From Calcarisporiella thermophila CBS 279.70 (Eukaryota; Fungi; Calcarisporiellomycota), in assembly GCF_041956535.1 (NCBI RefSeq), contig NW_027192205.1, positions 532,877 through 596,876 of the forward strand: a DNA stretch of 64,000 nt, read 5' to 3'. The notes under the pieces were generated by a model. That model did no database searches, was not told the DNA's origin, and saw only the letters and a program-made list of their open reading frames with translations. Both the position numbers and the translations under genes were made by a program. How positions within the stretch are numbered: the stretch's first letter is position 1; each line of letters begins with the position of its first letter. Of the stretch, positions 6,650 to 61,747 are shown one piece after another.

Positions 6650-8459
6650 CTACCGCCGCCGACCTGTGGAAAAGTGGGTTGGTTCTCGATTCAGATCGGA
6701 GGAGCGAGTGTAATGATGATGTTGGCCAATATCCTTCAGGTGGCCGAACCGCTCCTGGAAGCGAATCAAATCGCGCGTGAGTTGGTCGAGCATTTCCAGA
6801 CTGCTCAGTTCTTCGGCTGTAGCATTACTATCCCCCTTTGGAGACTCTTTCGATGTGAAGGCCCCTGCTTCTGCGGCCGATTCGCTTTTTGGTAAAGAAT
6901 CGAGTGGATCATTCGATGTAGCTCGTTCAGGGGTTGCGGTCGATGTTGTCGCAGCCGCTGTGACCGATGCTGACGTGGGGGTGGGGGTCCCTCGGGTAAT
7001 TAGAATGCTTGGGGGAGACACGGCCGGTGATTCTGCTGTAGGTCCCTCACGTTCCTCTTCCATTCCAACTCTTGTGCCGGGCTTCCCTCTCCGTTTTGTC
7101 GCTGCTTTTCTTCCCTTTGAATGACTACTCATCTTCTCCTCGCTATCACTTCCGGTATCCGTCCCCAAGAGGTATTTCCGAGTGGTCGCCATCTCGACTT
7201 GTACGCTTGTGATATAGTCGAGCAACAGTTTCGCCCGCTTGTTCATATCGTTGAAGGTCATCTTTGCAGAGGGATAACGCACTTTGGCGGGCGGTGAAGG
7301 GGCGCGTGCATCAGGGGCACCGGAGGAACTTTCGGGCTGGGGAGTGGACGTCCGTGAATTTGTGTTTCGCTTAGGGGCGCGCTTTCCAAACTCACCACCC
7401 CCTCTTCGCCTGCCTTGCGGCTTTTGGGGAGGAGGCTCGTCCAATATTTCCTTCGAGGCTCGCCCATCGTCCCCGCCCAATTCGTCCTTGACCTCATTTT
7501 CCATCCTCGTGTCAGCGGGGTCGTCGGGGGAAGCTCCGCGTGATTTTACCCTGGGGTTGTCGCTATCCGCGGTTCTTCGCTTCCGCTTTGCCGGTCGCTC
7601 TCCCTCCATCTCACTTCCAGTGCTTCCCATTTTATCCTCCTCTCCGAGACTCGGTGACCCTAGCGGCGTCGGACTTGAGGACCGCGAACGCTTACCCCCA
7701 ATGACATCGTCCACAAACTTGGAGGTGATCGTCTTCTTGGGATATTTCGCCGACAAATTTGAGTCACCTTCCTTATTGTCCACCTCTGGCGCGTATAATG
7801 GCTTGTTCTCTTCCTCCACTGCAATCTGTAACTCTTCAAGAGAGGCGCTGGAGGCTTTTTTCCTCCGTTTGTTTGAGCGAGTGTCGAGATCTTGCCGTGC
7901 GGATTTGGTCAGATTTTCGGGGAGCGGCAGAGCCGCATCTCGGCTATTCATGGTGCTCCGTTTTTTCGTTGGGGATTTTTGCTGTTTGGCATCTCGATAG
8001 GTGTGTCTTTTTCTTCTGCAAACAATCGCCGATCATTAAATGGGCAAACCTCCCAGCAATTCACCGGAGAAATGAAAAACTTACCCCGAGTTTCCCACAC
8101 GCACCACAATGTGGTTTTCAGGCCGGCATTCTTCGCAATAATACATGTCCGGAATCCCCTTCTCTGACACAATTCCAACGCAGATGCAATGCTGCCATAC
8201 TTTGCATTCCTCACACTGAATCATGATTCCTTCGTGATCTGAGGCGATATACAATCCCATCAGGGGTCACCTTTAACATTAGCAATTGGAGAAAGGATGA
8301 ATACTTACGCACTTCCCCACATATACACCGTGTGAAGCCCCCATCTTCACCTTCCATCTCCTCATCATCACCTTCCCCGCCGACATTTTGCTGCTGATCC
8401 TCGCTCGGCGATGCTTCCGGTAACATCTCTTCATAATCATCTTGTGGCTCATCTGCCAT
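6650..8459 (-). CDS. CTI6: PHD-finger protein Cti6 (Rpd3L-associated); at least 3 exons, 5' end may extend upstream
   Basis: Spliced translation gives PHD finger TRCICGE..IMIQCEECKVWQHCICVG..YYCEECRP, then KKRSTMNSRDA, DMNKRAKLLLDYITSVQVEMA and LEMLDQLTRDLIRFQERFG, which are Cti6-type segments. Confidence 0.82.
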
Positions 8460-14220: not shown

Positions 14221-16806
14221 ATGCCGTCAACATTGTCGGCTAAATCCTCCGCTCCGCCAGCGCCGACGGTCTCTGCTGGCCAAACCCACATATCAGCTGC
14301 CAATGGTACCAGCGATGCGGATCTGAATTCCCTCCAGAATGGACATCACCCCACAGCAAAGACAAAGTCACGGATTGCAAATCCTCCTGTGCCCGTATCG
14401 ATGGGAGCAGGTGCTCGCAATATGGCCAAACCAAAAACACGGCAGAAGCAAGCAGGATGTGATGCCAATATTCCACTAACGGAATTGCGAGATGCGATGG
14501 AGGGTTCTAAATTAGAGAAGCATTTAGGAAGAGAGGCCCAGGTGGAATTTGATGAATTGACACCCGAGGCTGTGCAGGAGTACATCGCGTCCTTGCTAAG
14601 CGAAGATATGATAGCGCAATGCAATAACGACGATCCCAACACCAACACCGGTGAAAGGGATGGGATAAATAATGAGATAATAGGGAATGGAGTAGGAGTA
14701 GGGGTTGCAGATTTCTCACAGCCATCAAAACTGTTAGACTCTGTGAGCAATTTTTTGAAATTCGTATCACAGCAGCAACAGCAACAGCAACAAGACCAGC
14801 CAGCCGCTACTTTAATCACCAGCTCCGCTGCCGCTACAGCAACTAAGACAGATCTGAAAAATGGAACCGCCACAGATATCAGCACAAGGGACTGGTCTGA
14901 CAATAACACAGAAAGAAATTCAAGTAGATTAGAAGAGGAGCCGGTGCGAGAGGCATTAGCGACAGACAGGAGCAGCAGAGCGACGCAGTCGCCTCCCCCC
15001 ATCAATTGGCCAACGGGCACAGGAGGAACTGCGCCCCTGATTGATCTCTCCATCTTCAACCCCTCCAACGTTTCATTCGCAGCTCCACAGCTCTTCACCT
15101 CCTCTGCTTCCTCCTCCGCCTCTATCTATGGCCCCTCAACATCTAATTCACTCTCCAGCAAGTACGTGCTTCCACTGGATCTCTCGCCGGACTCGATCCT
15201 TATCCTGCCTCCCAAGGACAATGCGCCTATTACTGCGCGAAGACTCGCACGACCGGTAAGTCGGCTATCAAGAGGTAAAAAGAGCGAGGAGGTCTCAACA
15301 GAAGAGGGTGAAAGGCGGGAGGAGAATCGAGAAGGCGGAGAAAAGGAGACTGTAGCCATAGCTCAGGTGCCGATCGTGTCGGCCTCGTCCTTTGCCAGCT
15401 CGGCCGCGAAGGGAGATTTGGAGGATCCTCTGCACACTCTCACCTCGAAATTGAATGCGTTCCATATTGGAGCCTATCACATGCGTGGGGACGCGTTCAA
15501 CGAGGATGAGGATGAGGAGGACGAGGAGGACGAGGAGGATCTAGGCAGCATGGGAGTAGAGGATGTGGACGAGTGTGACTATAACGAATACGCAGAATTT
15601 GCCGTGCTCTCTGACGGAGAAGGGTTCGCCGACGGAGGTGGCGCCAAGAAAAAGAAGCGGAAGGCCGTGTGTGGTGGGCAGACTACCACCGCTGCTGTTA
15701 CCACTTTATCTGTGGGAGCGATGTCGAGTTCAAGCCTTGGGGGTGTCAATGGCTTCAGACACGGTGTGTGTCGCCAGAGTCTTCACACCAAGCAGCGTAA
15801 GGAAAGGCGAGGGGGCTGCCCCACCCTTACAAAGCCGATGCCCCCTCCTTTCCACGCTGCGTCCCCCGTGGCCAAGGTTACCTCCGATTTGGCCAATTGT
15901 GAAATTGCTTCTCGCCCTCCTCAAGGTGAATTTGAATTTGAATGTAAACACATTGTGGACGAAGAGTTCCGCAAGCTAGCTGCTCGTGCAACGAGCAAGA
16001 TGCTCACAACGCCCTCCTCCTCGGGGCCCCCATCACAACCACCACCTCCTCCCCCCCCTCCTCCTCCCACATCCCCGCCCGCCCTTGACTCCGTGACCAA
16101 TGGCCCCTCTACTTCTCCCCACGCCATGCCCACCGCAAAGCCGTCACGTACTCGCAATTTACCGCCTACCAATTCAAAAAACACGAATCCAGCCCTGGTT
16201 TCGGTACCGACAACAAAACGCGCAGGAGGAAGGAAGAAGCTACCCAATAAATCTCATGGGAAGCCATCGCGTGCTGCGGTGTCATCGGCATCCTCGGCGA
16301 GTGGAGAGCAGGCCGAGCAACAGGGAAGACGACGTCAAACGCGGCTCCGAGGGCGTGGGACAGATACCGGAGACGGTGGCGGGGGTAGATGGGTGTGCTG
16401 GTTTTGTGAGTATGACTTGTATTGGGGCGACGGGCATCGCCGCCGAATGATGCGCGAACGAAATCGCCATCGACGCAGCAGTGGAAGGTATCACCAAAAC
16501 AGCAGAGGTCATATCGAGGAGCCCGACGAAGAAGAGGACGATATTGTGGTGGAGGAGGAAGAAGAGGAGGAGATCTATGAAAGTGATCTGCGGGAGGCCT
16601 ACCTTGACGAGGGGGTGACGGACGGCAGGAGAAGCTATGCCGACGACGGATCCAGCTGTGCTCACAAGTGCCACCACCTTGACCATCACTATTCCCACGG
16701 ACACCACTCTGTTCAATCGCTGCATTGCGGTAAGACCGCTGGCGATGGGAGACGAGAGTTTGCTGGAGGTAGAAGAGTTAAGCCCGCAAATGTGTCGGGG
16801 CAGTAA
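14221..16806 (+). CDS. 861-aa low-complexity protein with a C-terminal CxFCEYxxxxG motif (Ibd2-like)
   Basis: Long uninterrupted ORF with polyQ, acidic and polyP tracts. GEFEFE and WVCWFCEYDLYWG resemble my recollection of the conserved fungal Ibd2 blocks; the CDS is well supported, the family less so. Confidence 0.6.
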   Translation: MPSTLSAKSSAPPAPTVSAGQTHISAANGTSDADLNSLQNGHHPTAKTKSRIANPPVPVSMGAGARNMAKPKTRQKQAGCDANIPLTELRDAMEGSKLEKHLGREAQVEFDELTPEAVQEYIASLLSEDMIAQCNNDDPNTNTGERDGINNEIIGNGVGVGVADFSQPSKLLDSVSNFLKFVSQQQQQQQQDQPAATLITSSAAATATKTDLKNGTATDISTRDWSDNNTERNSSRLEEEPVREALATDRSSRATQSPPPINWPTGTGGTAPLIDLSIFNPSNVSFAAPQLFTSSASSSASIYGPSTSNSLSSKYVLPLDLSPDSILILPPKDNAPITARRLARPVSRLSRGKKSEEVSTEEGERREENREGGEKETVAIAQVPIVSASSFASSAAKGDLEDPLHTLTSKLNAFHIGAYHMRGDAFNEDEDEEDEEDEEDLGSMGVEDVDECDYNEYAEFAVLSDGEGFADGGGAKKKKRKAVCGGQTTTAAVTTLSVGAMSSSSLGGVNGFRHGVCRQSLHTKQRKERRGGCPTLTKPMPPPFHAASPVAKVTSDLANCEIASRPPQGEFEFECKHIVDEEFRKLAARATSKMLTTPSSSGPPSQPPPPPPPPPPTSPPALDSVTNGPSTSPHAMPTAKPSRTRNLPPTNSKNTNPALVSVPTTKRAGGRKKLPNKSHGKPSRAAVSSASSASGEQAEQQGRRRQTRLRGRGTDTGDGGGGRWVCWFCEYDLYWGDGHRRRMMRERNRHRRSSGRYHQNSRGHIEEPDEEEDDIVVEEEEEEEIYESDLREAYLDEGVTDGRRSYADDGSSCAHKCHHLDHHYSHGHHSVQSLHCGKTAGDGRREFAGGRRVKPANVSGQ
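14770..14793 (+). repeat. CAG/CAA coding microsatellite (polyQ)
   Basis: cagcagcaacagcaacagcaacaa encodes Q8. Confidence 0.8.
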
Positions 16807-43413: not shown

Positions 43414-46400
43414 CTAGGTTATAAATATAGGAGACGGGGGAACCGGCGATGTTGCTCGAGCAATATCAGCCATCATACCACTATCCATTCCTGACTGTAA
43501 TTGCAGTTGCTTTGGTACTTTTTTTTGACTACTCTGGGCTTCCTTGGAGACGTTCTCTTCAGATCGAAGATGGCTTCCGGCATCAATGGACTCGTCTGAA
43601 TCAGCCATCGTATCCCACTGTTCACGTAGCTGGTCTATTTCGGCAGTCAGGTCTCTTATAGAGGAAGGAAATTCACCAAAAGGTTCATTGGCCGAATGTG
43701 CAACGCCTTCTTGCTTCGAATTATCTGTTGTAGAAGCTAAGTTTTTCTTCTCTTCTGAGTTTACTGGACTTGTCTCTCCCAGCACTGGCTCTATTTGAGT
43801 CTCATTAGCATTCGAGATTTTTGGCTCCATCTGCGTGTGCACCAATGTCTCTCCTGCAATATCGCCCTTCTCCTTGAGAGATGCTTCAGTAGGTATTTGC
43901 TCTAACGATGTGTTCGTGTCCATTCCAACAGGTGCATCAGGCGCTTGGTGCGATATCATTGTGTCGAGATCTCTCAATTGAAGCGCTGCCACTTTATCAG
44001 TTTGCTCGCCATAATTCTCCAAATTGAACTCTTCGGCGCTCGAGTTTCTTTGTTTCGCTTCAATTTGCTTCCAGAGTTCTTCGTTTAACGCCAACGACTC
44101 TGCTAAATCTGTTCTCGCCTCATCCAACGCCTTCGTTAATGTCGAAATTTCGGCTTGCAGTACGTCATTTTGCTTAACTGAGGAGTTTTTTAGTTCGAGA
44201 TAACGCGTCTGGAGAAGAGAATGTTCTATTTCCATTTTTGCCTTCTCTTCTTGGAGACGGTCTTGATATGCATAGGCCTTGTTTTCAGCATTCGGGCCAG
44301 AAGGCGGGTGCGTTGATAGGGAAGATTGTAATGTTGCATTTTGATCTTGCAGAGTTCCTACTTCCTCAATACTCTGCTTGTGTGCAGCCTTTGCTTCTGC
44401 CAGCTTGACTTCGGCTTCTTTGTTCAGTTTTCTCAGTTCTTCAACCTCTTTTAAGAGTGCCGTTGTCTTTGCTGCGCTCAGATCCAATTCTGCTATAGCG
44501 TGGTTAAGCTGATTCGTCAACTCGGAGACTTGATCGGAGGAAGTGGGTCGCGATTCTCGAAGCCGGTCCGGGTGTAGTGAGCTATTGCTATGTAGGTCTG
44601 TATTGTGCTCTGTTTGAGTGCTCTTTGTGGCTGTTTGTGCCTCTTCGGAAAAGTTCATCAAGATCGTTGCTTCACGCATCAAATTCACTTGCTCTTCCAT
44701 TTCTCCAAAAACTTTGACAACGTCCTCAAGCGCAAGCTCCTTTTCCCTGACTATTTCCTTGAGCCGGTCCAGTTCTTCCTCTTCCGACCTTAGCTTTTGC
44801 TTAAGTGCTGCGTTTTCATTCTTCAGCTCGAGCCTTTTTCGCTCTAATCGCACAATCTGGCCTTTTGCGGTTGTAAGCTCCTTTGTGGCATTATTTGCGA
44901 CCAGCTGTGTCTCTCGCTGCATGTCCTGGAGCGCCTTAAGTTTGCTCTGGAATTTTTCAATGCTCTTTTCCGTTTCCTTATATTGTTCCTGCAATTGAAC
45001 CTGTTGCGCTCGGAGCGCATCCGCCTCTTCCTTCATATTCTTCCACATTTTGTCCAAGTGACGTGCACGATCCCGGGACCGGGTCGCATCGTTTCGCATC
45101 TTTTGCATCTCAATTTTCATGTTGCCTATGACCCTATCCCGTGCAGCAATATCATCTTTCGCTGAAGCAAGTTCCGACTCGAGAGTCTGCATGTCTTGGA
45201 ATGCGTTTGTCCACAACATTTCTGCTTCGTCAGCGCGTTGGTTTGATGCCTGGGCCACGGCTGTTGCTTGGTTCAGCGCAGCCTCGGTACGCTCAACTTT
45301 CTGCCGCAGCAACTCGAGCTCTCCCTCTTCTTCCCTTGAAAGAACTCGGAGAGTTTGAGATGCTTCCTTTGATGCTAGAAGGGCTCTGGCCTCACGTGCT
45401 ACAGATTCTGCCTCTTGGACACGCGCAAGGAGACCTTCTACTCTTTGAAGCAGAGCGGAACACTCGTTCTGGGATGACTCCAGATTTACGGCTACGTTTA
45501 CCGCTCTTTCCTCTGCAGCACTACGTGCCACCTGCTCCTTTTGTAGATCTTGCGATACTCGTTCCAGTCGAGCTCGTAGTGACTCGCTTTCATGAAGACT
45601 ACTCGACAAACTTCTCTCTAGTTCTTTCATCGTTGCAGTGGAATCTGGGTCCTTGGACGAAAAGCGTGTAAAAATGGATAGAAGCGCCTTGTAATAAGCG
45701 GCCTCCTGGACTGCAGCGGCGTAGGCCTGTTCATGCTCGCGGAGCTTCTCGGAGGAATGGGCGTGCACAACAAGGGAATCTTTAGTACGCACTATGTTTG
45801 CTTGAAATTCGCTTATTGCTTCCAGTAATCCCTTCCCCTCCATCTCATGTCCTGATTTTTCTTTTCGAGCAATTTCCTCTTTCCACCACCGCTCTATTTC
45901 TCGGAGTTCAGCAATGACCTTATCGCGTACCCGTATCTCCCTCAATAGTAGTCGTCTCTCTGCTTCAAATGGATCCTCTCCTACTCTACTTGTTAAACAT
46001 ATCCCACCCGCAATTCGTCAATATAATGCTTTTATAATATGCAACCCTTGTACTTACTTTTTCAAGGATTGCCGTTGGGACATTGTTGTTATTCTCATCT
46101 TAGTGCTACTGTCAGAAGGGGTTCTCTGAACTGGTGTAACGACGTTCCGTGGACCATGAGGGAGCGAAATCTCAACGGACTGTGATTTCCGATCGGGTGC
46201 CTGAGTTTCATTAGCACGAACTAATACGTTGTCGTCCTCGACTTTGGGAGAGAATCTCACAGACTTAGGTTGTCCATCTTCGTCCGGTGAAGATCTCTGG
46301 GTTACTGGAACGGGATTCTCGATGGGTTGTAGCTGCGAAGCAGGCTGCCGTTGAGCCGTCGGAAGTGGGGTGAATGGTAAGGGAGATGCAGATCGCTCCG

Positions 46401-53953: not shown

Positions 53954-54751
53954 TCACTCATTTTTCTTTTGAACTCCTAAATCTATCACCGCATATAAAG
54001 CATGTCCCGACATACATCCCAACAAGGTTCCTACAACAGCTGGGATGGGCCAAGCTTGCCATGGACGATCCCAGTCTAAAGGCAGAGTAATCGCACTTAA
54101 CCAAGCGCCAATGCAAGCTCCAAGTCCAGAATAGAGAACAGCAGATTCAACAGAGGTTTTAGCTTTAAAATCGATAAACACGCGAAACCAAGCGTTGACA
54201 TTGGTTCGCAATACCAGAAAGGCGGGGAGAACGGTTTGACTTGAAAGATATAACGAAAAGAGCCAAGTTTCTAAAATTTGGCTTAAAAAAATTAACCACA
54301 CATTAGTAACAGGCCATCTGAATATTAATAGTTTGAATGAAAAATACTTGAAAACTGGCGCTCCAAAGAGAATTGTCACTACATGAATTATAACGGCTCC
54401 TACAATTGTTGCCAGAGTGGCATATCCAAGCATCTAAGATTATAATTGTACAAAATTAACATTAATACAATTATAAAAAATTTTAATAATAATCTACTCA
54501 TTACTCACTAATTCTCTTCCTTTTACTTGCACACCGATCAGCATCTCTCCTAAAATTGCTGTACCAACTAATAAATATAAACGAGAAATCATCGTGTCTT
54601 TAGAGAGAAGTGACATATTTGGAATGGGTGAAAGAAGAGCGATCGTATTGAGCAAGAGATGAATCCGCTCGGTTGTGAGGGATGAGAGTGGTGGAAGAAC
54701 CACATTGGAGTTGGAAGCGGATTTGGACCGCTTGTTAGCTAAACGCGTCAT
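53954..54751 (-). CDS. GPI11: GPI biosynthesis protein PIG-F/Gpi11, 3 exons
   Basis: ILFGAP; GACIGAWLSAITLPLDWDRPWQAWP; C-terminal KKNE (KKXX ER-retrieval motif). Confidence 0.9.
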
Positions 54752-55124: not shown

Positions 55125-56086
55125 ATGTTCTTCCCTTTACGGCCCACTCTTTTTTACACTGCAAGGCATAGCACCGTAGAATTACGTTATTCATGTCTCA
55201 CCTCATACCCTCGCGCCAGTGTTGTTTTATTCCCACGAATTAACCGCCCATTTTCGAGTGCCTCTAAGAGTATCTTTACTCGTGACCAAAAACCCTCTCC
55301 ACTTAAGACTGCACTCATCGCAGCTGTACCGCTCGTCTTTTTCGGGCTGGGTACATGGCAGATATCACGCCTGCGATGGAAAGTCAATTTGATTTCAGAA
55401 CTAGAATCTCGTATTGCACAAGATGCGGTTCTCCTCCCTAGACGCATAACAGAAGATTCACTAGATGATTTTGAGTACCGGCGGGTTATAGCCAAGGGGA
55501 AATTTCGCCATGACCAGGAAATGCTACTTGGTCCACGCACACGGGGAGATGGAGTGCCGGGATACTTCGTTGTTACGCCTTTTGAGCGCGAAAATGGTAC
55601 AAAGATCCTGGTCAAGCGGGGCTGGATCGCAAAGGAAAAGCGCGAATCTAATGCCAGGCTCGAAGACGACGAAGTAATTATTGAGGGACTTTTGCGCAAA
55701 TCAGAAAAGGTGATTTTTCTTCTTTCTTCTACCTCTACCATCCCTGCATAGATCTCGCGCTAACCTCCATACTATATTTACAGAAAAATTCATTTATGCC
55801 TGAGAATCATCCAGAAAAGGATGAGTGGTACTATGCTGATCTACAGGCCATGGCCGAAAAAACTGGCTCACAAGCGGTTATGCTAGAGCAAATATCCGAA
55901 ATCAGCCCCAGTCTAATTCCCAAACTGGTAGAGGAAGGTAGACCTGTGGGAAGGCCTCCAACGGTAGAGTTACGGAATACACATTTGCAATATGCGATTA
56001 CCTGGTACTCCCTGTGCGCAGCAACCTCGACCATGCTGTATTTCCTCTTGCGAAAACCGACACGATCGCAAATTCGAAAATACTAA
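55125..56086 (+). CDS. SHY1: SURF1/Shy1 cytochrome c oxidase assembly factor, 2 exons
   Basis: FGLGTWQISRLRWK; EYRRV; GYFVVTPF; LVKRGWI; LRNTHLQYAITWYSL. Confidence 0.94.
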
Positions 56087-56557: not shown

Positions 56558-57319
56558 ATGTCAAATAAATCATTTGAAGAGCTGGTTGCCGAGGCTGAAT
56601 CCGTCTCCGTCGATGGGTGGGACTTCTCTTGGCTCGACGGACGGGCAACAGAGGAACGCCCTTCTTGGGGATACGCACGGTCCATGGCTGAACGCATGGC
56701 TCGCGCCACCGCTGCTCTTGATATCCAGACTGGTGGTGGGGAAGTCCTTGCCAGCGTCCCAAAGTTCCCACCCCTCACAGTTGCTACGGAATCTTGGCCG
56801 CCGAATGTTGCAAAGGCGACCGCACTGCTGCATCCGCTGGGGGTTGCTGTCGTGGCCGACGAAGACGAGCCGCCGCTCCCGTTCGCCGACGACGCATTTG
56901 ATCTCGTGGTTAGCCGCCACCCAGTAACGACCTATTGGGGCGAGATTGCCCGCGTACTACGTCCAGGAGGGACGTACTTCTCGCAACAGGTAGGCCCTGC
57001 CAGTGTCTTCGAGATGGTGGAATACTTCCTGGGACCGCAGCCAGAGGCACGTAAAAAGCGAGATCCGGAGGTGGCGAGGGCAGAGGCCGAGGCTGCTGGT
57101 CTGGAAGTGATTGACCTGCGGCTTGAAACACTCCGGATGGAATTTCACGACATCGGGGCGGTCATCTATTTTTTGCGAAAGGTCATCTGGACGGTGCCGG
57201 GATTCACCGTTGACAAATACAGAGACAAACTCAAAGCTCTACATGATCAAATCCAAGCAGAGGGGCCATTTATCGCCCACTCAACGAGATTTCTTATAGA
57301 GGCGCGAAAGCGTACGTAA
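56558..57319 (+). CDS. Class I SAM-dependent methyltransferase, bacterial-type (copy 1), intronless, 253 aa
   Basis: GWDFSWLDGRATEERPSWGY; motif I LDIQTGGGE; LPFADDAFDLVVSRH; EIARVLRPGG. Confidence 0.9.
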   Translation: MSNKSFEELVAEAESVSVDGWDFSWLDGRATEERPSWGYARSMAERMARATAALDIQTGGGEVLASVPKFPPLTVATESWPPNVAKATALLHPLGVAVVADEDEPPLPFADDAFDLVVSRHPVTTYWGEIARVLRPGGTYFSQQVGPASVFEMVEYFLGPQPEARKKRDPEVARAEAEAAGLEVIDLRLETLRMEFHDIGAVIYFLRKVIWTVPGFTVDKYRDKLKALHDQIQAEGPFIAHSTRFLIEARKRT

Positions 57320-58188
57320 TCTTATTTAACTTAAAATAAAGGATACACCTAGCATACGGAATACTATGCATTCGTGATGGGCGGAAATAATGGGAAAATA
57401 AATTGTATAGACAAGTATCCGTAGAAATTTTTGCTGATATTTGACTATTCAATCAGCTCTTGCGGAAGCCATATGGTTTAATATTTGAAGATGTTAACTA
57501 TAATAGGTATGGCTCAACAAACAGCAGTAGCCCTCTTACAAGATTGGCTCATGTAAGAGGACCACTAGGGATATTAAAAACTATATGTATAAAGCCGATT
57601 GTCTCTCAGCTGTTGCATTGCTATAGCCCTGAAGGCAGTGATATTCTAACAAAACCACTTCGGACACCTTTTCCATCCTTGAAAATAGCCTAGCCTACAA
57701 AAGACGTAAGTATTAAAGTCTCCATCACGTGTCCGGCGTTCAACTTTGTTGGGAAACGTTTGTATTCGGGCGATAGTTTGACAGAGGAGCCTGGGTTAAT
57801 AAACTTTACTGGTCTCTGGATTCTATCTTAACTGTCAAGATGTGGCGAATGTATCCGATGAAGATCTCTATTGCCCTTTATGATCCAATGCAATGCAGCG
57901 TTTTTTTCCCAGGTGCAGTCTTTTCTTTTACATGATTATTTATGCATTTCGTATTTGCTCTTTTCACGTTTTACAGATTGATTGCGTTCTTCCGATTTAA
58001 GGTTGTGTTCATCGTTTCTCCTTTTCGGTATAGAGCATACGGTATTACCTTCCCACGGGCAGAAAAGAGCGACCAATTTATTTCGATATAAAAGATTGCG
58101 TGTAGTAGTTTTTTCATCGAGGAAAAATTATTTCATATCATTCTTTATAACCGAAGCACTCTCCTTACAAACTCAGGATATTACGGCA

Positions 58189-58962
58189 ATGACGGTGTCA
58201 AATAGATCTTTCGAAGAGCTAGTTGCAGAGGCCGAGACTGTTTCCGTTGACGGCTGGGAGTTTTCCTGGCTTGACGGTCGAGCAACCGAAGAGCGCCCCT
58301 CTTGGGGATACGCACGGTCCATGGCTGAACGCATGGCTCGCGCTACATCCGCTCTTGATATCCAGACAGGTGGCGGGGAGGTTCTCGCCACTGTTCCCAA
58401 ATTCCCACCCGTCACAGTTGCAATAGAATACTGGCCACCGAATATCGCTATAGCTACTGCACGATTGCATCCTCGAGGGGTTGCTGTTGTGGCCGTCGAG
58501 GATGTACCGGTGTTCCCATTCGCCGACAACGCATTTGACCTTGTAGTCAGTCGTCATCCGATAAACAACTACTGGGAGGAGATTGCTCGCGTATTGCGTC
58601 CAGGCGGCACCTATTTCTCGCAACAGGTAGGCCCCGCCACCGTCATCGAGCTGAAGGAATACTTTCTGGGGCCACAGCCAGATGCATATAAAAGCCGGGA
58701 TCCGGAGGTGGCCAGGGCGGAGGCCGAAGCTGTCGGTCTGGAAGTGATTGACTTGCGACTCGAATCCCTCCGAATGGAATTTTTTGACATCGGAGCGGTT
58801 ATTTATTTCCTGCGAAAAGTAGTTTGGACCATACCAGACTTTTCTGTTGATAAGTACAGAGACAAGCTCAGAGACTTGCACGATCATATCCAGTCGAAGG
58901 GCTCATTCGTCGCACACTCGACACGATTTCTCATAGAAGCCCGTAAGCGTATGACGGTTTAA
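58189..58962 (+). CDS. Class I SAM-dependent methyltransferase, bacterial-type (copy 2, tandem paralog), intronless, 257 aa
   Basis: Collinear with copy 1; about 43 substitutions over about 252 aligned residues by hand count; same motifs. Confidence 0.9.
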   Translation: MTVSNRSFEELVAEAETVSVDGWEFSWLDGRATEERPSWGYARSMAERMARATSALDIQTGGGEVLATVPKFPPVTVAIEYWPPNIAIATARLHPRGVAVVAVEDVPVFPFADNAFDLVVSRHPINNYWEEIARVLRPGGTYFSQQVGPATVIELKEYFLGPQPDAYKSRDPEVARAEAEAVGLEVIDLRLESLRMEFFDIGAVIYFLRKVVWTIPDFSVDKYRDKLRDLHDHIQSKGSFVAHSTRFLIEARKRMTV

Positions 58963-60178: not shown

Positions 60179-61747
60179 ATGCGGATTAATAGACTCTTTA
60201 TTTTACCGCTCCTGCTCTCTCTTTCTGTAGTCAGGGCCCAGGACTCTGAGCTCACGACCCAGCAACTCCTAGATCAAGCCCATGCTCATCTTGCTGCTGG
60301 GCGGCCACAAGATGCACTGCAAGCTTATGATCAGGCAATTCTTAAAGACCCTCAGAACTACCTTTCTTACTTCAAGCGGGCCGCTACTTATCTTTCGCTT
60401 GGAAAGCATCGCGCTGCTCTAGACGATTTCTCAAAGATTCTTTCTCTCAAGCCTGATTTTGAACAAGCTCTTTTGCAACGGGCAAAACTGCTGGCCCAGG
60501 AGGGATCGTTTGACGAAGCGGAGCGAGATTTGCGTAAGTTCTTAGGAATGCGTGCGAAAGATGGGGAAGCAACCCAGCTCCTTTCCAATGTTCAGCAGGC
60601 TCAAACAGCCTTGAAGACTGCAAGCACTCATTTTGCTGGTGGGCGCCATAGCGAGTGTGTAAAAGTATTAGACCCGGCGATCAACACCGCGCCTAATCAC
60701 CCACGGATGCGGCTTCTCCGTGGGAGATGTCGTTTGATGATGGGAGAAGAGGGCGCAATGGGAGACTTGCAGAGGGCAGCCTCTTTAGATCCGTCCAACG
60801 CTGATACTCTCAGGGAGATCACCTTGCTGACCTTCTATACCCTGAATGATCGAAAGCAGGCCCTAACTAATGTAAAATCTTGCCTGCACTACGATCCGGA
60901 GCACAAAGTGTGCAAGGCACTATATCGCCAGCTGAAGCAACTGGACCGCGATATCCAGCAGGCGAGTCAGGATCTGGAGGCCGGGAGAATTATTGGTGCG
61001 ACAAACAAGCTTGTCGGTTCAGGCCAACGGACAGGGGCTATTCGAGCCTCTGAACAGGCAATGGAAGAATTAGCAAAAGAGTTTAAATCGATGACTAAGG
61101 AGAAGAGCAAACTACTTGCAGAGCTCTATGGGATGGCATGTCGGGCGAGCCGGGAGCGAGAGACAGACGAGCTGCGCTTGTGTGGAGAGGCGCTCCGCTT
61201 TGACCCCGACAACGTTGATGCCCTTCTTGGTCACGCCAATGCATTGATGCGTAACTCACAGTACGACGATGCCCTCCGAGACCTAAACAAAGCCCACACT
61301 CTGACCCATGGGCAAGATCGCCGAGTACTTGAAGCCATGTCACGGTGCCAGCGGATGCTTCGGCAATCGAAGCGACGGGATTACTATAAGGTCCTAGGAG
61401 TCCCACGCGATGCAGGGGCACGCGAGATCAAGAAAGCATATCGCAAGCTTGCTCAGGAGTGGCACCCAGACAAATACCGCGGTGATCTTCCGAAGGAAGA
61501 AGTTGCCAAGAAGATGAGCGAGATTAATGAGGCCTACGAAGTCCTGAGCAATGAAGAATTGAAGGCTAGATACGACTCTGGCGATGACCCGAATGATCCA
61601 GAGGGTCAGCACGGTTTCCATTACCAACACGGAGGAAATCCCTTCGGGCCATTTGGGGGTGAAGGTTTCCCATTCTTCCAAGCCGGAGGGTTCCCATTCC
61701 AGCAGGGAGGGGATGGACAGTGGACCTTCAAGATGCACTTTGGCTGA
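60179..61747 (+). CDS. ER co-chaperone DnaJC3/P58IPK (TPR repeats + J domain), intronless
   Basis: Signal peptide; TPR repeats ([15 protein letters not shown]; [11 protein letters not shown]); J domain [22 protein letters not shown]; G/F-rich tail. Confidence 0.94.

Follow-up and report, generated by a model that had tools for sequence, protein, structure and literature searches.

The stretch of Calcarisporiella thermophila CBS 279.70 DNA analyzed here (contig NW_027192205.1, positions 532,877 to 596,876; the whole 64,000 nucleotides are called the window below) is part of the 752-kb scaffold MU987578.1 of assembly GCA_041956535.1. It contains two adjacent genes, MT1 and MT2, for class I S-adenosylmethionine (SAM)-dependent methyltransferases, which have their nearest relatives among the Actinobacteria and lie between ordinary fungal genes. 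The two genes and the interval that separates them are arranged as follows.

56558-57319, + strand: MT1, an ATG-to-stop open reading frame (ORF) of 253 amino acids without introns, class I SAM-dependent methyltransferase, the conservative copy
57320-58188, no strand: spacer between MT1 and MT2, 869 bp, AT-rich
58189-58962, + strand: MT2, an intronless ORF of 257 amino acids, tandem paralogue of MT1, the fast-evolving copy

The initial annotation of this DNA had described two intact, intronless, same-strand methyltransferases of about 255 amino acids set about 870 bp apart, and that description holds at 253 and 257 amino acids and 869 bp. All of the motifs that it listed were found as well (SFEELVAEAE, GWDFSWLDGRATEERPSWGY, DIQTGGGEVL, WPPN, SRHP, QQVGP, and DIGAVIYFLRKV). 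The two proteins align without gaps from end to end at 83% identity (209/252 residues, E = 4e-161) and the genes at 78% nucleotide identity. Similarity between the two copies extends from just 3' of the ATG up to the stop codon; the flanks are unalignable, and the spacer has no similarity to the flanks of MT1. Apart from a 5' extension of the MT2 frame, the spacer contains no ORF of at least 80 amino acids, and an AATAAA-like signal is located 16 nt 3' of the MT1 stop. No third copy or fragment of the methyltransferase was found in the whole 64-kb window by tblastn with MT1. ORFs are also present antisense to MT1 (56570-56920, - strand, 116 amino acids) and MT2 (58219-58887, - strand, 222 amino acids), most likely as a side effect of the higher GC of the coding sequence and not as genes; spurious antisense ORFs from the same GC effect occur at the Streptomyces loci.

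MT1 and MT2 are of bacterial ancestry. When 5.8 billion proteins were searched by word index, at least 8000 matches were significant, the best 120 of which were examined; with nameless metagenome-derived entries taken as bacterial, all of these were bacterial but for MT1, MT2, and four proteins of fungi. Named bacterial matches among the 120 belong mostly to Streptomyces, but also to Streptacidiphilus, Rhodococcus, Amycolatopsis, Saccharopolyspora, and two myxobacteria; their identity is 77-84% and their coverage 93-100% of the length. MT1 has 80-83% identity, over 98-99% of its length, with more than 100 of the actinobacterial proteins and with a few from myxobacteria. The fungal homologues are from Basidiobolus meristosporus (84% identity), B. 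ranarum (86% and 84%), and Bifiguratus adelaidae (80%), so that the fungal presence is patchy, being confined besides the window to three proteins of Basidiobolus and one of Bifiguratus among the best 120 of 8000. Further eukaryotic copies were found neither among the matches listed nor in a second search of the 5.8 billion proteins with a fungal-only profile built from the six sequences. When bacterial genomes were scanned, one for each species, 333 relatives were confirmed, and 79 of the best 80 are Actinomycetota (61 of them Streptomyces), the remaining one being a member of the Myxococcota. An exhaustive HMMER search delimited the wider family as 320 clusters at 50% identity (E <= 1e-30). 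These clusters carry no organism names; the few named distant members of the family are actinobacterial and the others come from metagenomes. The nearest relatives are actinobacterial at 80-83% identity, compared with no more than 48% between the DnaJC3 of the host and any fungal homologue. The Basidiobolus and Bifiguratus copies are likewise intronless and flanked by eukaryotic genes, at four loci that are unrelated to each other and to the window. One gene neighboring the Bifiguratus methyltransferase contains an intron.

MT1 and MT2 pair as sisters (support 100/97) in a careful maximum-likelihood tree of 64 sequences and are therefore products of a duplication within this lineage. Their synonymous divergence (dS) of 1.27 and nonsynonymous divergence (dN) of 0.097, giving a dN/dS of 0.076, indicate an old duplication and strong purifying selection. 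Divergence after duplication was asymmetric: relative-rate tests with eight outgroups counted 27-31 substitutions private to MT2 against 4-9 private to MT1 (p = 5e-6 to 5e-4), and the terminal branches in the 64-sequence tree are 0.30 for MT2 and 0.012 for MT1. Where nine other family members agree, MT2 deviates at 18 positions and MT1 at none. Among 54 columns conserved throughout the family, defined over members 35-85% identical to MT1, all 54 are kept in MT1 and 51 in MT2, the changes in the latter being D22E, T77I, and L107F. If dS is split evenly between the copies, the dN/dS ratio (omega) would be roughly 0.02 for MT1 and 0.13 for MT2. MT2 thus appears to be relaxed or shifting, not decaying. 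Basidiobolus ranarum also has a pair of paralogues, on different contigs (L002:4142-4924 and L003:1493-2362), which are sisters with a support of 97/86 and therefore represent an independent duplication, so that the gene has been duplicated separately in two fungi. The B. ranarum pair has a dS of ~1.18 and a dN/dS of ~0.076, a depth about that of MT1 and MT2.

The pair is integrated in the fungal genome, with the following genes around it.

55125-56086, + strand: SURF1/SHY1, 5' of MT1; exon 1 at 55125-55709, intron at 55710-55783, exon 2 at 55784-56086
60179-61747, + strand: co-chaperone with TPR and DnaJ (DnaJC3/p58IPK-like), 522 amino acids, Pfam DnaJ and TPR families, 3' of MT2
53954-54433, - strand: PIG-F fragment (one exon) of glycosylphosphatidylinositol biosynthesis, Pfam PIG-F E = 1e-28, a eukaryotic marker upstream

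The initial annotation had placed the pair between SHY1 and DnaJC3, and Pfam supports both flanking identities. The two SURF1 exons, scanned separately, match Pfam SURF1 with E = 3e-36 and 5e-13 over profile positions 2-127 and 133-205, and the 74-nt intron between them is spliceosomal, with GT..AG borders and a CTAAC branch site. Other genes of the window encode mitochondrial EF-Ts, arrestin, WD40, and HAD-hydrolase proteins. GC content at third codon positions (GC3) is 0.575 in MT1 and 0.527 in MT2, the host coding set (3769 codons) having 0.527, and is 0.38-0.58 in the Basidiobolus and Bifiguratus copies as opposed to 0.89-0.94 in the Streptomyces, Rhodococcus, and Vitiosangium orthologues. 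The GC of the MT1/MT2 region is no outlier among the coding parts of the window. Synonymous sites are saturated between any fungal and any bacterial copy (proportion of synonymous differences, pS, 0.75-0.89) and likewise between the copies of separate fungal lineages. The transfer is accordingly old and fully ameliorated, not recent. Correlation of relative synonymous codon usage was discarded as a host test, giving r ~0.3 alike for a host gene, the methyltransferases, and bacterial genes; GC3 was informative instead.

Homologues of the host DnaJC3 are fungal only, with 37-48% identity (46% to Basidiobolus), and the protein is approximately equidistant from those of Mucorales, Umbelopsis, Mortierellaceae, Glomeromycotina, and Basidiobolus. 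In the DnaJC3 tree the host stands alone on a long branch (0.65) outside a tight Basidiobolus clade and outside Mucorales, Mortierellaceae, and Glomeromycotina, and the protein database contained no close relative of it. On the basis of these identities and this separate branch, the host is an isolated early-diverging fungal lineage and not a Basidiobolus. The DnaJC3 locus of B. meristosporus is not syntenic with the SURF1-DnaJC3 interval of the window. Farther away in the window, three ORFs have no Pfam match at E <= 1e-5 (14221-16806, + strand, 861 amino acids; 43414-45945, - strand, 843 amino acids; 6650-7951, - strand, 433 amino acids), and the highest GC of the window, 0.577, is reached in the 15-16 kb region.

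A donor within the Actinomycetota is supported, and the Streptomycetaceae are its most likely source, the tree being too shallow to indicate a species. In the 64-sequence tree the sister of the fungal group is Streptomyces sp. NBC_00083 together with BR1 (support 88/89), and in a tree without MT2 the fungi are found ten nodes deep beside the same two sequences. Fungal monophyly is not rejected by the approximately unbiased (AU) test (p = 0.82). The fungal copies have a loop that is one residue shorter (LGPQP-EAR), but a subset of Streptomyces sequences has the same form, and we therefore regard the loop as the mark of a donor subgroup and not as a fungal novelty. It is possible that the fungal copies share one origin, in which case the transfer need not have taken place in this lineage. 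As a soft argument, the methyltransferase distance between the host and Basidiobolus would be ~6 times too small for vertical descent at the within-Basidiobolus rate, scaled to DnaJC3; this figure is read from branch lengths, and rates differ fourfold among the fungal copies. The data agree equally with a single entry and later spread from fungus to fungus, with a single entry and massive loss afterward, and with several entries from related donors.

Within Streptomyces the methyltransferase is part of the core chromosomal synteny, and copies of the family are also present on actinobacterial megaplasmids; no phage copies of the family were found. No neighbor common to the loci of Streptomyces, Rhodococcus, Vitiosangium, Nocardia, the S. 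clavuligerus plasmid pSCL4, and the Mycobacterium avium plasmid was found, and because no neighbor is kept across bacterial genera we consider this a stand-alone gene. The pSCL4 copy (L090:4947-5714) is located amid genes for a GNAT acetyltransferase, a small AAA ATPase, a member of the aminoglycoside-phosphotransferase family, an ABC transporter, and a TetR regulator, a neighborhood that resembles resistance genes, although as a single record it is suggestive only. On the linear M. avium plasmid p1-JPH1, a 60%-identical member (L091:4935-5732) lies between IS607/TnpB and other transposase genes, indicating that the family can be mobile in bacteria; the same copy adjoins a Ser/Thr kinase and HipA toxin-antitoxin pair. 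Co-transfer with an MFS transporter was considered and rejected. Intronless MFS-type genes adjoin the methyltransferase in both Basidiobolus species (L001:10925-12508 and L002:1828-3363) but are unrelated to each other, so the adjacency is a coincidence.

MT1 (35.1 bits) and MT2 (44.4 bits) both exceed the Pfam Methyltransf_11 gathering cut-off of 21.2 bits, and no NCBIfam equivalog applies to either, all scores being far below the cut-offs. The AlphaFold2 model of MT1 (pLDDT 96.5, pTM 0.91) has a Rossmann-like core, a short N-terminal helix-strand segment with the GWDFSW motif, and a C-terminal beta-rich lid. The best 50 Foldseek matches in the Protein Data Bank all have a probability of 1.0 and are methyltransferases or proteins of that fold, one of them being the cyclase SpnF. 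The nearest solved structures (BH2331, Anabaena 3ccf, RlmA(I), BioC, YcgJ, RebM, TleD, and JHAMT) have TM-scores of 0.50-0.66 and 13-19% identity, and since none is close enough we transfer no substrate from them. The initial annotation had related the family to Bacillus YbaJ and suggested detoxification as one possible role; what was found in the direction of YbaJ were weak profile matches to YcgJ and BH2331 and homologues with 36-38% identity on Bacillales plasmids. Both copies contain the motif I loop LDIQTGGGE, a TGGG variant of GxGxG, and the acidic E78 at the end of strand 2, and both keep the family-invariant residues T58, G59, G61, E78, L91, P108, R132, and W211. The conserved polar or aromatic residues outside the cofactor site (W21, D22, R29, W37, Y39, R120, H121, E129, R132, Q143, D198, and W211) suggest a defined pocket with several arginines. 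Our best guess, held with low confidence, is a stand-alone small-molecule methyltransferase whose substrate may be acidic or otherwise ubiquitous and common to actinomycetes and fungi. A substrate present in both groups would explain how the gene could work after transfer without partners. Two specific assignments were rejected. BioC-type malonyl-ACP O-methyltransferase activity is contradicted by a TIGR02072 score of 21.3 bits against a cut-off of 185, by 14% identity at a TM-score of ~0.6, and by the lack of bio genes nearby. An RlmA/Erm(32)-type 23S rRNA guanine-N1 methyltransferase is not supported by the NCBIfam Erm32 model, which matches MT2 only and at 18.8 bits against a cut-off of 550; the match to RlmA 1p91 (E = 3e-4) covers core residues 43-153 only.

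Taken as a whole, we are confident, short of certainty, that the locus is best explained by an actinobacterial transfer followed by integration, tandem duplication, and retention of both copies as SAM methyltransferases with asymmetric divergence. The initial annotation had likewise proposed a bacterium-to-fungus transfer that was kept and duplicated, a proposal strengthened by the 80-83% identity to actinobacterial proteins, the restriction among fungi to Basidiobolus and Bifiguratus besides the host, the intron-bearing neighbors, the host-like GC3, and the pairing of MT1 with MT2 at 100/97. It had set against such a transfer the prospect that orthologues would prove widespread in fungi and follow the species tree; among the matches listed, the gene was found in three fungal lineages only. 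Bacterial contamination or a chimeric assembly join, placing MT1 and MT2 outside the fungal genome, might be suspected from proteins 83% identical to Streptomyces and genes without introns, but we give it almost no credence: GC3 is 0.53-0.58 as in the host, all bacterial orthologues examined having 0.89-0.94, comparison with any of the bacterial genes shows saturation at synonymous sites, the flanks and the spacer, AT-rich as they are, resemble the remaining window, the genes lie within a 752-kb scaffold and are flanked by spliced SURF1 and by DnaJC3, and the Basidiobolus and Bifiguratus homologues are also ameliorated with eukaryotic genes around them. It is similarly very improbable that the two genes are separate acquisitions that landed side by side without any duplication. 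Although MT1 is no more identical to MT2 than to Streptomyces (83% in both cases) and the flanks have no mutual similarity, the faster evolution of MT2 accounts for the equal identities, flanks would not be expected to stay similar at a dS of ~1.3, the two are sisters in the careful tree (100/97), and adjacency on the same strand fits tandem duplication. Vertical inheritance of an ancient eukaryotic or fungal gene that almost all fungi have since lost, with the gene's bacterial likeness due to extreme conservation or to fungus-to-bacterium transfer, would agree with the single group of six fungal sequences that the AU test does not reject, with the root that far outgroups place beside the window copies when MT2 is included, and with the very slow evolution of the family. 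We nevertheless regard it as most unlikely, in that the root by MT2 is a long-branch artefact that shifts to a bacterial branch without MT2, the named distant family members are actinobacterial, hundreds of actinobacterial species carry the gene with chromosomal synteny conserved within Streptomyces, only three fungal lineages have it and at four unrelated loci, and DnaJC3 is 46% identical to Basidiobolus while the methyltransferase is 84-86% identical.

Several observations weigh against the transfer history preferred here or against the function that we attach to it. In the 64-sequence tree, a single group unites the six fungal sequences, with a weak support of 76/58. When representatives 36-58% identical were used in an attempt at rooting (a 78-row set with branches of 1-4 substitutions per site), the far outgroups attached to the long MT2 branch with MT2 in and to a bacterial branch with MT2 out; distant-member rooting was consequently rejected as a basis for direction or nesting, its long branches being prone to long-branch attraction artefacts. 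Because the family root is unstable, the case for nesting of the fungi within Streptomyces is drawn from the tree without MT2 and from the distribution of the gene among taxa. In one quick MT2-free tree Nocardia sp. NPDC051832 (L009:6001-6759) joins the Bifiguratus copy inside the fungal cluster with a support of 79, which hints at a separate acquisition of the Bifiguratus copy. Integration was judged on the assembled sequence, and the copies on their gene sequences. As to function, the structural matches span small-molecule, acyl-ACP, and rRNA methyltransferases, making the substrate class a guess, and small-molecule tailoring enzymes rarely keep ~80% identity from one bacterial order to another, which could point to a conserved macromolecular substrate. 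The transferred enzyme would then act on rRNA, tRNA, or protein and on no small molecule, a view that we take seriously but hold to be rather doubtful. In its favor are the ~80% identity across Streptomyces, Nocardia, Rhodococcus, myxobacteria, and fungi at a dN/dS of 0.05-0.08, values more typical of universal macromolecular substrates, the presence of RlmA(I), the 23S rRNA G745 methyltransferase, among the best sequence and fold matches, and the weak Erm(32) match of MT2; however, the RlmA match involves the generic SAM-binding core only (E = 3e-4, TM-score 0.58), Erm(32) reaches just 18.8 of the required 550, small-molecule or acyl-carrier methyltransferases make up most of the other top fold matches, and no RNA-binding domain was detected in the Pfam scan.

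Under the transfer history that we prefer, an ancestor of this early-diverging fungus would have gained a stand-alone class I SAM-dependent methyltransferase gene from a very highly conserved actinobacterial family that is most abundant in the Streptomycetaceae, either directly from a bacterium or via another fungus already carrying the gene. The gene would have been inserted between ordinary nuclear genes and would have lost its bacterial base composition, and a later tandem duplication would have produced two copies, both kept as enzymes under strong purifying selection. MT1 would have remained almost unchanged, and MT2 would have evolved ~6 times faster with its cofactor-binding and family-signature residues retained. 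Of this history, the analysis demonstrates the bacterial ancestry, the integration into the genome, the duplication within the lineage, the purifying selection, and the asymmetry of divergence. Each protein is predicted from its residues to bind SAM via the TGGGE loop and E78 and may methylate a substrate to which actinomycetes and fungi both have access, as suggested by a gene that works without a co-transferred partner. The substrate would most likely be small, possibly an anionic metabolite or xenobiotic held under the C-terminal lid, and MT2 may be drifting toward an altered substrate preference or lower constraint.

The finding leaves the general picture unchanged but adds a clean, well-bounded case to the bacterial genes known to be fixed in early-diverging fungi, here outside Basidiobolus. 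The family is unusually conserved, with ~80% identity between actinobacterial orders, myxobacteria, and three lineages of fungi, and is entirely uncharacterized; that fungi have repeatedly kept it without partner genes makes it worthwhile for substrate discovery. Moreover, the tandem pair is a natural experiment in which a frozen and an accelerated copy can be compared after duplication of a transferred enzyme. We offer as speculation, and think it unlikely on balance, that the gene entered fungi a single time, then moved among or was retained in only three deeply separated lineages, was independently duplicated in at least two of them, and acts on a universal, important substrate as implied by its near-frozen sequence. 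If this were true, the family would methylate a cellular or environmental substrate of real selective importance.

Among solved structures of the Methyltransf_11 family, BH2331 (1vl5), YcgJ (1xxl), Anabaena 3ccf, BioC (8x8i), and RlmA(I) (1p91) have the same Rossmann-like core and C-terminal lid as the window proteins (profile E 4e-15 to 5e-11; Foldseek probability 1.0, TM-scores 0.58-0.66), but differ in having only 13-19% identity and no counterpart of the N-terminal GWDFSW segment. The best two of these matches are themselves uncharacterized. Much closer is the equally uncharacterized actinobacterial family of ~253 amino acids represented by Streptomyces sp. NBC_00083, S. fildesensis, and Rhodococcus sp. 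MTM3W5.2, with a full-length identity of 80-83%. The N-terminal GWDFSW...PSWGY, the DIQTGGGE loop, SRHP, QQVGP, and DIGAVIYFLRKV are common to this family and the fungal copies, the latter differing in their eukaryotic setting, eukaryotic base composition, and shorter LGPQP-EAR loop.

Bacterial genes in Basidiobolus are described as making up 2-5% of genes, with a median of zero introns and a base composition and codon usage like those of the host, and the Actinobacteria as the third most common donor group (main text of Tabima et al. 2020, PMC7466969). Interkingdom transfers have also been documented in other early-diverging fungi (main text of Ciach et al. 2024, PMC11291939). The methyltransferase family is unmentioned in the main text of either paper. 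Like the cases presented there, the window genes are intronless, have bacterial best matches, are situated amid fungal genes, and have a host-like base composition, and a link to Basidiobolus is provided by its proteins being the nearest eukaryotic homologues of MT1 and MT2. Unlike the cases of Tabima et al., the window's host is not Basidiobolus, its DnaJC3 being on a separate long branch, and in comparison with the cases in the main text of both papers the locus is marked in addition by a tandem duplication that is old and was followed by asymmetric divergence. The MT1/MT2 locus is therefore the same kind of event as the documented fungal transfers, in another host lineage and with an uncharacterized family.

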